DNA of 63,922 nucleotides, the filler included, from Olpidium bornovanus S191 (Eukaryota > Fungi > Olpidiomycota): NCBI GenBank assembly GCA_017911155.1. It is 27 parts of 27 records of this genome, joined end to end, with 100 filler letters (N's around TTAATTAATTAA, not from the genome) between each part and the next. Parts side by side here need not be neighbours in the genome. Positions count along the whole stretch, not along the records: positions 33,233 to 36,276 come from JAEFCI010012462.1; 26 more parts are not named here. One strand, given 5' to 3'. Position 1 is the first letter of the stretch. Each line of letters opens with the position of its first letter. Below are positions 32,311 to 36,719 of this stretch, piece by piece. The position numbers were made by a program, and so were the translations under genes. The notes under the pieces were generated by a model. It did not search any database and had not been told where the DNA came from. It saw only the letters and a program-made list of their open reading frames with translations.

Positions 32311-33364
32311 AAATATGTGCACCGGTGCAGATATCGGTGCAGATATGCGCACCGGCTTTGGCTGTCATGCGATATCTTCTAGTGATGTCACGTTGGTGAC
32401 TCCCGATATATCAACGAGATATCTGGGGGGTTTGGCTGTGTAGTGCGGAAGTCGAAAATTTTTACCCTTTTTCAAAAATATTTGTGGCGCGACAGGTTGA
32501 CCGAAAGAGAGCACTCCGGAACGCCCGCGCGCCCATCGGACGTTCCCGTCATGGTGGGGCGGCGCGAAGGGTGGCTCCGGCGATAGAAGGTTAACGAGAT
32601 GCCGTGACGAAAGAGCGGGGGCAGCGCGCCTCTGCCGGTCCCTCTTCCCAGGGTTGAGTGGCAGTCAATCACTGCTAAATGGCGGATGTGGATGGATCCG
32701 GAAACGCGTGACGAACGACGCACGCAGAAAGCCCGCGCCCGCGCGCAACGCGGTCCCGTAACTAAAATAACTGAACGGCGCGCCCTGTCGAGTTACGTCC
32801 GGATTCTCGTTTTTCTCTGTTTTCTTTTTTTTCTTTTGGTTCGGTTTTCTCTTTTTTTCAAGTTTCTTTTGGTTCGGTTTTCTCTTTTTTTCAAGTTTTT
32901 TTTTTTTTCCTTTTTTTTTTTTTTTTTTTTCCTATTTTCATTTTTTCCTATTTTCTTTTTTTCCTATTTTCTTTTTTTTTCGTTCGATTTCTTTTTGGTT
33001 TCTGTTCTTCTTTTCTTTATTTTTTTTTGTTTTTGTTTTCTTTTTTTTCTTGTTTTTCTCTTTTTCTCCCTTCTCTTTTTCCTTTTTTTTCTTCTTTTTT
33101 TCATTTTCTTTTTGAAATATTCCAACGTGAACNNNNNNNNNNNNNNNNNNNNNNNNNNNNNNNNNNNNNNNNNNNNTTAATTAATTAANNNNNNNNNNNN
33201 NNNNNNNNNNNNNNNNNNNNNNNNNNNNNNNNAAAAAAGGCGACGCCGGCCTCTCTGTCCCGCTCCTTTACGGCGGTCTCCTTGCCTCCTGCGACAAAAC
33301 GGATATCGTCCGCAGCCTCAGGAGTCTCGTCTGATCGGAGGCTCGCCGGTGCCAAATACGAAAA

Positions 33365-36232
33365 TTGCATGGTTACAGGATCCAGGCCTCTGCCAACGGA
33401 CAATCGTCGTCCTCCAACGAGTCGGCGGACTCGGATTTCACGCTCGACGGGCCTCTGTCAAACTCCTTCCTGAAGGAGGAACAGAGTCCCGCTCGGGTCT
33501 TAGACCTCTGCTGCGGTCAAGGTCGCCACGCCCTGCAGCTGGCCAGGGAATATCCCCACTTGACCATATGCGGTCACGACCAGTCTTCTTTTTTGATATC
33601 TCTGGCTAAGGAACGCGCGGCGGCCGCCGGCCTGACCGTCAACACGACGTTTACCGTCGGGGATTGCCGCAGCGCCCCCTACCCGGACGAGCACTTCCAG
33701 CTGATCCTCGTCCTGGGGAATTCTTTCGGGTATTTCGATGCTGATTCCGGCGACCGTGCGTTCCTCGACGAGGTGTACCGCCTGCTGGCGCCGGGGGGCC
33801 ACGTCGTCCTGGACCTCGTCGACGGCGGCTACATGCGGGAAAACTTCGCCGAGCGCTCCTGGGAGTGGGTGGACGACTCCACGTTCGTTTGCCGCGAACG
33901 CGCGCTCTCCCGTGACGCGAAGCGGCTCCTGTCCCGCGAGGTCGTGACGGTCGCGGATCACGGGGTGGTCCGCGACCAGTTTTACCAGGAGCGGCTGTAC
34001 TCCCGCTCCGAGATCACCGACCTCCTCGAGTCCTCGGGCCTCCTGGACGTCGCCAAGCTCAATGACGGCGGGTACGGGACCAACTCGCTTCTGCGTTACG
34101 AAGCCTCGTACGGCTCGTCGTCTTCGTGTTCTTCGAACGAAACGGACTCGTCCGTTCCGCCGGTCAAGCCTTCGCCGGCCGAGATCGTGACGGCCGCCAA
34201 GGACATGAGCAAGCGGAAAGAGGATCTGGGCATGATGGAGCAGAGGATGTTTATTTTTGCGATGAAACCGACGTGGCTCGAATGCTCCGAGGCCGACGAG
34301 CACGAGACGAAGAACCCCGAGGAGATCGTTATCCCCTCCCCGAAACCGAAGGCGTGCCGCTTCCCGGCAAAGACCGACCGTCGCGGCAAGTCCAAGCGGC
34401 AAGCCAGCCGCGCAAGCCGCTCCTCGAGCGCCACCGCGAGCGACGAAGAGGCCGAGGGCGAACGCGGGGGCGACCCGGCGGACTTCGTCGCCGCTGCGCC
34501 GCCCGAGCCGGCCGCCGTGCCCCGGCAGGTTCGCGCGCCAGGCGTACGTGCGCCGCCGGCGTTCCCCGCGCCCTTCACCGTCATTCTCGGCGATCCGCGC
34601 ATTCCGTGTCCCGGGAAGCTCAACGACACGTGGAACCCGGAGGATTACGACACCCGCCGGCGGCTGATCGACGCCCTCGTCGAGATGGGCTACCCGCGAT
34701 CGAGTTTCGAAGTCCTCGACGACCACTCGTCCCTCGTCGCGGACCTGTGCGCGCAGAAGCCGGGTTTCGTCTTTAACCTGTGCGACGAGGGCTTCGGCAA
34801 CGACGCTCTCAAAGAGCTCCACGTTCCGGCATTGCTGGAGACGCTGGGCGCCAAGTACAGCGGTGCGGGCCCGGTCTGCCTGGGAATCTGCTTTGATAAA
34901 GGTGAGGTACCGGTAATTACGGCGTGCTCGGGCGTCAAATTTTAGTCGGACGCTCACCCTGCCCGACGTTAACCCGGATGTGCAAGGTCTGGTCAACCGC
35001 ACCGCCAAAGCGCTCGGGGTGCCCACCCCGCGAGAAACGTACTACCTGGCCGAGAACGCTTCCACTCGGTTCCTGGCGGACCCGGGCTCGTCGCCCAGCC
35101 CCGACTTTTACGACCCTGTACTCCCTGCATCAGCCTGGCAAGCACGCGAATCATCGTCGAAGTCTCTCACTCCTTGCACGCAAGACATCACGGCCGTCAC
35201 CACGGCCATCGCCACCGAGATCGGGTACCCGTGCTTTATTAAACCAATGCGGGGCGACAACTCCATCGGCATTACCACGCGGTCCATAATCCACACGCCG
35301 GCCGAAGCCGCGAGCTACATACGCGAGCTTCGCGGAATGGACATCAGCGACGTCATCATCCAGGAATACCTGGAGGGACCCGAGTACGGTGTAGGCGTCA
35401 TCGGCAACCTTGTTCACCAAGACGGGGGGACGGGCACGGAAGGGAACGGCCTGAGATATCTGCCGACCATGAAAGTTTGTATTCCGCGTCCCGCACTTTC
35501 GAACCTTCGAAACTCTGTGCACCGTCCTGCGGCCGAAACGACTCCTGATATCCTCTTCTTACCCCCCCCACACCTTTGCGGGTATCCGACATGCGGGTGT
35601 GTCCAGGTTGACTTCAGCCGCATCGTCGACCTCGACCTACCCCCGATACTCGGGTTTGAGTCCAAATGGAACCCCGCGAGTCCGTACTGGTCTGGTACGC
35701 GCAATCGTCCCGCTTTGGATTCGCGACTGAAAACTCGCGGTTAACAGCGGCTCCCCGCCGCGTCGGTACTGCGCAAAAAAAAAAACAAAAAAAAAACGTG
35801 GCGGGTCGGGCAGAGGTCCGGTACGTCCCCGCTCAGCTTCCCGCGGAGACGGAGGCCGCGCTGCGGACGTGGTGCGCGGTCCTGTTCGAGCGGTTCGGCT
35901 GCCGCGACTACGCGCGGTTTGATTTCCGGGCCGACAGCCGCGGCGCGATCAAGCTCCTCGAGGTGAACCCGAACCCGGGCTGGTGCTGGGACGGCAAGCT
36001 CGCGCACATGGGCGAGTTCGAGGGTTCTTCGTACCCGGACGTCCTGCGCGAGGTGCTCGAGGCGGCGCATCGGCGCTGCTTCCCGCCCGAGGAGAAGCCG
36101 CCCGCGCACGCCGCGGGCCCCGCAGCTGCGGTCGACGGGCTCGAGGTCAAAAGGGCATGGCCTCTGCCGCCGGCGGCAGGCGAGAAGGAGAACGGGGTCG
36201 CGGAAGGGGGCGAAACGTCCCCGCCGCCGTGA
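33365..36232 (+). CDS. Class I SAM methyltransferase + D-Ala-D-Ala-ligase-like ATP-grasp fusion protein, 4 exons, 5' end uncertain
   Basis: MTase motifs VLDLCCGQGRH and LGNSFGYF. ATP-grasp motifs VFNLCDEG, ELHVPALLE, DKG, FIKPMRGDNSIGI, IIQEYLEGPEYGVGVIG, RDYARFDFR, LLEVNPNPG. Phase-consistent GT-AG introns at 34902-34986, 35475-35606 and 35695-35813. Confidence 0.9.
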
Positions 36233-36719
36233 TATCCGCCCGCCTTCCTCCCCCCCCTTCCTCCTTTTCTCCCTGTNNNNNNNNNNNNNNNNNNNNNNNN
36301 NNNNNNNNNNNNNNNNNNNNTTAATTAATTAANNNNNNNNNNNNNNNNNNNNNNNNNNNNNNNNNNNNNNNNNNNNCATGCGGTCCACCAGGGACATCGC
36401 CCGCGGCCTCGGCGGAAAGGCCGGCGGAAAGGCCGGCGGTTCTGGCCGTAACGCAGAGACTCGCTCCTGTTCCATTGAAAACGTCTCCGGCTGTTTTTTT
36501 TGTTTTTTGTTTTTTGTTTTTGCCAGGCAGGAACAGATTACGCCTGTCGTTCAGAAACACGCAGATCACACACGCTGACCTCCCCCTCCGCCCCGCCCCG
36601 CTCCCCTTCCACGCGTCCTTCGCACCGCGGGCATTTCGCAACTGCTTGAAGGAAGGCGTCAGAATGGCAACCAACGGGACGATTTACCTTCTGCTGCACC
36701 TCAGCCCGCCCGGTGAGCC

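Follow-up and report, generated by a model that had tools for sequence, protein, structure and literature searches.

A methyltransferase–ATP-grasp ligase fusion gene of Olpidium bornovanus, a divergent member of a family found across zoosporic fungi and prokaryotes

Why does a fungus carry a ligase related to the D-alanine-D-alanine ligases (Ddl), and why is it fused to a methyltransferase? The question is raised by a locus of Olpidium bornovanus S191 (GenBank assembly GCA_017911155.1), which lies in a stretch of 63,922 nucleotides made of joined genome parts; this whole stretch is called the window here, and all coordinates count along it. To our knowledge, no peptidoglycan is made by the fungi and archaea in which the gene occurs. 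The piece at 33233–36276, from record JAEFCI010012462.1, holds one gene on the plus strand encoding a class I S-adenosylmethionine (SAM) methyltransferase followed by a Ddl-type ATP-grasp ligase. This gene is a member of a large, annotated, biochemically uncharacterised fusion family. As judged from sequence comparison, the family is probably a conserved bifunctional enzyme that couples ATP-dependent amide formation with N-methylation of an amine, yielding a small N-methylated amide or dipeptide-like metabolite, and not a D-alanine-D-alanine ligase of peptidoglycan synthesis.

The piece, with a G+C content of 63.9%, was scanned exon by exon, and all searches, alignments and trees were made with single exons. 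Pfam detected Methyltransf_25 at 33380–34900 (4e-19) and Dala_Dala_lig_C at both 34989–35474 (1e-8) and 35816–36229 (2e-10), in agreement with an earlier note, made from the sequence alone, that had proposed a methyltransferase–ATP-grasp fusion on this strand. The motifs quoted there are indeed all visible in the translated open reading frames (ORFs), as DK, FIKP..GDNSIG, QEYLEGPEY, LGFESKW, RDYARFDF and EVNPNPG. Eight homologues compared with the piece by tblastn gave three collinear blocks, in which the gaps coincide with frame changes, and canonical GT..AG splice sites flank all three tblastn gaps. The four exons, counted from 33386, total 2,508 nt, a multiple of three, and their junction codons are consistent. 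The locus is a genuine fungal nuclear gene with spliceosomal introns, so that the note's reading of three introns in a resident gene is borne out by the tblastn gaps and the splice sites.

Exon A (33386–34901, with an approximate 5' boundary) was recognised by Pfam, by PDB entry 9RI2, by chytrid homologues (48-50% identity, 93% coverage) and by conserved positions. It encodes the NmbA-like class I SAM methyltransferase domain (about 33482–34045) with motif I LDLCCGQGRH at 33500–33529, then a linker rich in Ser, Ala and Pro, a conserved interdomain helix, SKRKEDLGMMEQRMF, at about 34208–34250, and the ligase N-terminal domain (NLCDEG..KELHVP..YSGAGP..C.DK, about 34571–34901). The fusion of the methyltransferase with the ligase N-terminal domain reads in one continuous frame within this exon. 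Intron 1 (34902–34986; 85 nt, phase 1, GTGAGG..CAAG), located at a tblastn gap, contains the stop that ends the long ORF. Exon B (34987–35474), the site of the first Dala_Dala_lig_C match, encodes the central ATP-grasp domain with FIKPMRGDNSIG and IIQEYLEGPEYGV. It is followed by intron 2 (35475–35606; 132 nt, phase 0, GTTTGT..CCAG), which appears as a 44-residue gap against all homologues. Exon C (35607–35694) holds the equivalent of the Ddl omega-loop (VDFSRIV..LPPILGFESKWNPASPYWS), aligned to the YDYEAKY of DdlB through the bacterial homologue P0069, and a near-invariant S-K-W..P.SPYW. After intron 3 (35695–35813; 119 nt, phase 1, GTACGC..GCAG), which has an A-rich run and again lies at a tblastn gap, exon D (35814–36232) provides the C-terminal ATP-grasp catalytic region (CRDYARFDFR, LLEVNPNPGWCWDGK), matched by Pfam (2e-10) and by PDB chains of Ddl and VanA. 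It ends in a short Pro/Ala-rich tail and the stop TGA at 36230–36232.

The fusion is neither rare nor new. In fact, a search with exon A (507 aa) retrieves full-length proteins that have this architecture (43-50% identity, 93% coverage), and the fusion is found in essentially every chytrid order sampled, namely Rhizophydiales (including Batrachochytrium), Spizellomycetales, Rhizophlyctidales, Chytridiales, Cladochytriales, Lobulomycetales, Synchytriales and Polychytriales, as well as in Caulochytrium, Rozella and the blastoclad Coelomomyces. The next-closest proteins to exon A are bacterial, 630-690 residues long and about 43% identical. A scan of 185,579 genomes, one per prokaryotic species, found 513 stretches that encode a relative, with carriers in Stellaceae and other Alphaproteobacteria, Planctomycetota, Sumerlaeota, Anaerolineales and a metagenome-assembled genome (MAG) of Bathyarchaeia. 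By a word search, at least 5,685 protein clusters match the archaeal copy at E <= 1e-50. Prokaryotic members, the Bathyarchaeia MAG included, are approximately 70% identical across phyla, which would point to very strong constraint or else to lateral spread in recent times. Almost all of the prokaryotic members (loci L007-L086, proteins P0121-P0228) come from MAGs or metagenomes and few from cultured isolates. In the ESM Atlas, clusters with the fusion architecture belong to Chytridiomycota, Pseudomonadota, Bacteroidota and Methanobacteriota. The same resource holds a fusion of a PrmA/MTS-type methyltransferase with Dala_Dala_lig_C in Thermodesulfobacteriota (375 members), a CPSase_L-type ATP-grasp fused to a methyltransferase in Actinomycetota and, as no more than a lead, a cluster of Ascomycota proteins of 547 residues with Methyltransf_25 and Dala_Dala_lig_C; these other fusions are probably independent.

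Members of the family are named in databases as 'methyltransferase domain-containing protein', 'D-alanine-D-alanine ligase' or 'ATP-grasp domain-containing protein', and BATDEDRAFT_34316 of Batrachochytrium dendrobatidis (Bd) and SPPG_09245 of Spizellomyces punctatus have the same domain order as the Olpidium copy. The rarity implied by the earlier note does not hold, since the zoosporic fungi have inherited the fusion as a single clade, and since it is annotated in databases and was reported for Bd in 2016 (PMC5005798). Among the findings that would refute it, the note had named an already characterised, widely inherited fungal enzyme; the family is widely inherited, while a literature search for a characterised methyltransferase–ATP-grasp fusion returned nothing relevant, and no biochemical characterisation of any member was found. 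DsyGD, the bifunctional enzyme of DMSP synthesis, was considered as a precedent and set aside, its C-terminal domain being ureidoglycolate-lyase-like (PF04115) and not ATP-grasp. The Olpidium copy is a divergent new member of this known, widely inherited family. Conservation reaches at least 93% in 157 columns when 113 full-length members are aligned, and the Olpidium copy keeps 156 of these 157 near-invariant residues, the exception being a Y to F change at 34883; the constraint of the family therefore acts on that portion of the gene which the piece contains. It differs from other members by a long branch outside the sampled chytrid orders, by a longer Pro/Ser-rich insertion in exon B and by its 5' truncation in the piece. 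Furthermore, the Bd, Rhizophlyctis and Fimicolochytrium genes (L087, L088, L089) have a single intron each, in a shared position that precedes motif I by a few codons, and none in the ligase half, so that the three ligase-half introns of Olpidium are lineage-specific.

What does the methyltransferase half act on? Its best solved relative is PDB 9RI2 (E = 9e-23 with exon A, 3e-24 with P0069), with the next methyltransferase reaching only 1e-8, and the alignment spans the Rossmann core, the strands of the Cap domain and a common SFGYF segment after strand 4. 9RI2 is the N-methyl-bacillithiol synthase NmbA of Chlorobaculum tepidum (CT1040), described in 2025 as methylating the cysteine amine of bacillithiol, that is, the free alpha-amine of an amide-linked amino acid (PMC12719100), and it is the closest solved and characterised relative of this half. 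Further matches of P0069 are the daptide N-methyltransferase model, aligned along almost its entire length (5e-18), and CypM (9e-9). These three are the nearest characterised relatives, and all of them methylate free primary amines. The match to C. tepidum NmbA points to relatedness and not orthology, as far as sequence tells. NmbA is a stand-alone protein of 266 residues that acts with BshA, BshB and BshC, whereas the domain of the fusion family is joined to a ligase. The bacillithiol pathway is reported to occur in no eukaryote or archaeon (PMC12719100), and because no eukaryote is reported to have it, bacillithiol is not the expected substrate here.

The ligase half was approached through the bacterial homologue P0069, which was modelled by AlphaFold2 in place of the Olpidium protein (pLDDT 87.7, pTM 0.61). 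The model matches entire Ddl chains, such as DdlB 4C5A and 1IOW, at a TM score of 0.84 over about 340 columns, so the C-terminal half is a complete three-domain Ddl fold, and Pfam did not detect the Ddl N-terminal domain model. Residues were mapped by a HMMER alignment of P0069 to E. coli DdlB together with the equivalent motifs of the Olpidium copy. DdlB residues for ATP, Mg and catalysis are kept, namely K144 (FIKP), E180 (QEYL), K215 (ESKW), R255 and D257 (ARFDFR), E270 and N272 (EVNPNP) and G276. By contrast, positions that bind D-Ala are replaced, with Y216 changed to W, S281 to G and L282 to K, and the equivalent of S150 is N in the Olpidium copy and S in bacteria. Positions equivalent to E15 and H63 of Ddl, which likewise have a role in D-Ala binding, could not be assigned by sequence alignment. 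Full-length homologues score 85-105 bits against the NCBIfam Ddl models, whose cut-offs are 243-246 bits, and the Olpidium exons score 26-45 bits against NCBIfam models, exon D matching the Ddl models from 5e-12, with every match far below the curated cut-off. With ATP and Mg residues kept, D-Ala residues replaced and scores below the Ddl cut-offs, this half is an active-looking ligase of Ddl lineage but not a D-Ala-D-Ala ligase. It would be a catalytically plausible ATP-grasp ligase with a non-Ddl pocket, and the earlier reading of a Ddl-like enzyme with changed substrate residues is upheld by the DdlB mapping. With DdlB and VanA (EC 6.3.2.4 and relatives) the family has in common the three-domain ATP-grasp fold and the residues for ATP, Mg and the acyl phosphate; it differs from them by the changed pocket positions, by the fused methyltransferase and by hosts without peptidoglycan.

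Gene neighbourhoods in prokaryotes, which had been put forward as a clue to the substrate, gave no such clue. ORFs were clustered over 80 prokaryotic loci, and three further bacterial loci were inspected; no neighbour common to several phyla was found in the 80 loci, nor in the three. The largest apparent cluster in the 80 loci is spurious, consisting of antisense ORFs of the fusion gene itself. The sole recurrent neighbours, a sigma-70-family factor and a decarboxylase, are in a synteny limited to the Stellaceae lineage. In the Stellaceae/Alphaproteobacteria loci (L007-L049), the sigma factor lies divergently upstream at 33 loci, with regions 1.2, 2 and 4 and a median ORF of 312 aa, and a pyridoxal phosphate (PLP)-dependent decarboxylase of the Orn/DAP/Arg type lies downstream at 15 loci. 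In a Sedimentisphaerales MAG (L005:933-9911) the fusion gene is directly downstream of clpB on the same strand, with groES, groEL and dnaJ just beyond; these chaperone neighbours hint at a stress-related context. In a Hyphomicrobiales MAG (L004:7178-9965), the fusion gene is preceded on its strand, at a distance of 200 bp, by a separate gene for a 206-residue UbiE-type methyltransferase. The neighbourhood data define no pathway, and they fit a self-contained enzyme.

Based on these findings, a two-step mechanism may be proposed. The ligase half would activate a carboxylate as an acyl phosphate and join it to an amine to form an amide or dipeptide-like bond, and the methyltransferase half would N-methylate the free primary amine of the ligation product or of one of the substrates. 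A single polypeptide would in this way make a small N-methylated amide metabolite without partner genes. A comparable logic is seen in Ngg, a bifunctional N-acetyltransferase/ATP-grasp dipeptide synthase in the synthesis of the osmolyte N-acetylglutaminylglutamine amide (NAGGN), where the ATP-grasp ligase that forms the amide and the enzyme that caps the alpha-amine are parts of one polypeptide; the likeness is one of description only. Unlike the family, Ngg has a GNAT acetyltransferase and not a methyltransferase as its capping domain, and it has a partner amidotransferase, AsnO. The earlier note had already suggested a self-contained two-step N-methylating enzyme, and this stands in part: with nearest relatives that methylate amines and no neighbour shared across phyla, which is indirect evidence, a self-contained enzyme that ligates and then N-methylates is plausible but unproven. 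In its boldest form, the one-protein pathway would lead to an N-methylated cysteinyl low-molecular-weight thiol, by analogy with N-methyl-bacillithiol, with the ligase half as a cysteine ligase and the NmbA-like half capping the amine. We hold this version to be quite improbable; if true, the thiol would be present in all zoosporic fungi, and it would also be widespread among Planctomycetota, Alphaproteobacteria and archaea that have not been cultured.

Several points weigh against the proposed ligation and N-methylation. Sequence similarity to N-methyltransferases, on which the methyltransferase assignment is based, is about 30%, and clades of this kind can change their class of substrate. 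It is not necessary that both domains serve one pathway, and the pTM of the P0069 model leaves their mutual arrangement unsettled. With the N-terminus absent from the piece, the intactness of the whole gene cannot be shown. An identity of some 70% across phyla together with 157 near-invariant positions is unusual for an enzyme of a niche metabolite, and the substrate could be a macromolecule. In that case the carboxylate of a protein or peptide would receive an amino acid from the ATP-grasp half, in the manner of RimK, and the methyltransferase would act on the N-terminal amine of a peptide, as CypM and the daptide enzymes do. These peptide-amine enzymes are among the nearest characterised relatives, the gene stands without biosynthetic neighbours, and enzymes whose targets are conserved macromolecules often show very high conservation from one domain of life to another, as this family does. 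However, the ligase half is nearest in sequence and fold to the small-molecule enzymes Ddl and VanA and not to RimK or the graspetide ligases, no recurrent precursor-peptide or RiPP genes lie alongside in the clustered prokaryotic loci, and NmbA, the best match of the methyltransferase, has a small-molecule substrate. The patchy prokaryotic spread, 513 stretches against 185,579 species genomes, also speaks against a housekeeping target. Modification of a macromolecule or peptide, the chief alternative, is thus considered unlikely.

The database names, if taken literally, would make the protein a functional D-alanine-D-alanine (or D-Ala-D-X) ligase with an added methyltransferase. Its score deficit against the NCBIfam cut-offs, the altered D-Ala-binding positions (Y216W, S281G, L282K and, in Olpidium, S150N), the Ddl N-terminal domain that Pfam fails to detect and the carrier fungi and archaea without peptidoglycan make this very improbable, in spite of the homologues that bear the name, the best fold matches, which are Ddl enzymes, and the conserved ATP and Mg residues. 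An artefact, whether from contamination by bacteria, from chimeric assembly or from the reading of two neighbouring genes as one, might be suspected in a piece of only 3 kb whose closest non-fungal relatives are bacterial and in which intron 2, being in frame and stop-free, allows part of the structure to be read unspliced. It is hardly credible, given three canonical GT..AG introns exactly at the homology gaps, an exon A frame that is unbroken through the methyltransferase and the ligase N-terminal domain, the fully supported position of the copy within the fungal clade, and the single-gene fusion that also occurs on megabase-scale chytrid scaffolds amid ordinary eukaryotic genes. The bifunctional enzyme that forms and N-methylates an amide accordingly stays the preferred reading.

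How did the fusion come to be in fungi? Two unrooted trees were built, by FastTree with 128 rows and by IQ-TREE PMSF with 40 rows, and in both the fungi and the Olpidium copy are split from all prokaryotes with 100% support. The Olpidium copy is a long branch on the fungal side, outside the core chytrid orders and near the deep branches of Caulochytrium and Coelomomyces, and its sister is not resolved. The trees fit a fusion that was present once, and early, in the stem of the fungi and was passed on vertically from there. The host of this copy would be an early-diverging fungus, probably a zoosporic one. Being unrooted, they give no direction of transfer; of the prokaryotic origin suggested earlier, what stands is that the non-fungal relatives are prokaryotic. 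The Bd, Rhizophlyctis and Fimicolochytrium fusion genes are flanked by ordinary eukaryotic genes on large scaffolds. Sun et al. (2016) listed the Batrachochytrium copy among bacterial-to-Bd transfers, as a 'D-alanine-D-alanine ligase' with a SAM-methyltransferase GO term (PMC5005798).

The 5' end of the Olpidium gene is incomplete. Its span had been given as 33365–36232, of which the end at the TGA is retained and the start is not, as the TTG at 33365 is merely the first TTG past an in-frame TGA (33332–33334) and is not a start codon. No in-frame ATG upstream of methyltransferase motif I is present in the piece, so exon A must start at an acceptor, for which the AGs at 33377-78 and 33384-85 are candidates. 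Homologues extend approximately 90-120 residues further towards the N-terminus, including an invariant Y..TDGDV motif within the segment W-W..F..Y-L-x-T-D-G-D-V-V-E. These residues are not recognisable in 33233–33385, where tblastn with homologue N-termini gave nothing significant, and the gene is therefore cut by the edge of the piece; the family N-terminal segment presumably lies beyond it. The plus-strand region 33233–33385 may be an intron and/or a poorly conserved upstream exon. An upstream exon in the piece was considered for the frame-1 peptide of 33233–33331, which is faintly N-terminus-like (tblastn E > 1), but is not supported, as it scores against the family N-terminus profile at the level of 300 shuffled copies, with no other peptide doing better.

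Some further features of the locus may be added. With its insertion, exon B has 57 residues between two conserved anchors; most fungal members have 28 there, and insertions of 49-54 residues occur at this site in a few of the fungal relatives. A fourth intron was sought here and dismissed: only two frame-preserving GT..AG candidates exist, of which 35039–35098 would remove conserved residues and 35118–35162 is very short (45 nt). With no convincing intron, the segment is read as a loop insertion. As intron 2 is in frame and stop-free, a transcript retaining it would still encode a full-length protein, with 44 residues added just before the omega-loop equivalent. A 508-codon antisense ORF (33500–35026, minus strand) overlaps the gene and is typical of an artefact of coding sequence with high G+C.

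In conclusion, the sequence feature itself is ordinary, and the 3-kb Olpidium copy adds little beyond the family. The enzyme, in turn, is conserved in essentially all flagellated fungi, the amphibian pathogens included, and it recurs, with an identity that is unusually high, in uncultured prokaryotes by the thousands. With the structure of NmbA newly solved, a concrete and testable hypothesis can be framed, in which ligation would be followed by N-methylation of a primary amine. The family is a reasonable target for enzyme discovery, and the question of its substrate lends it some value.

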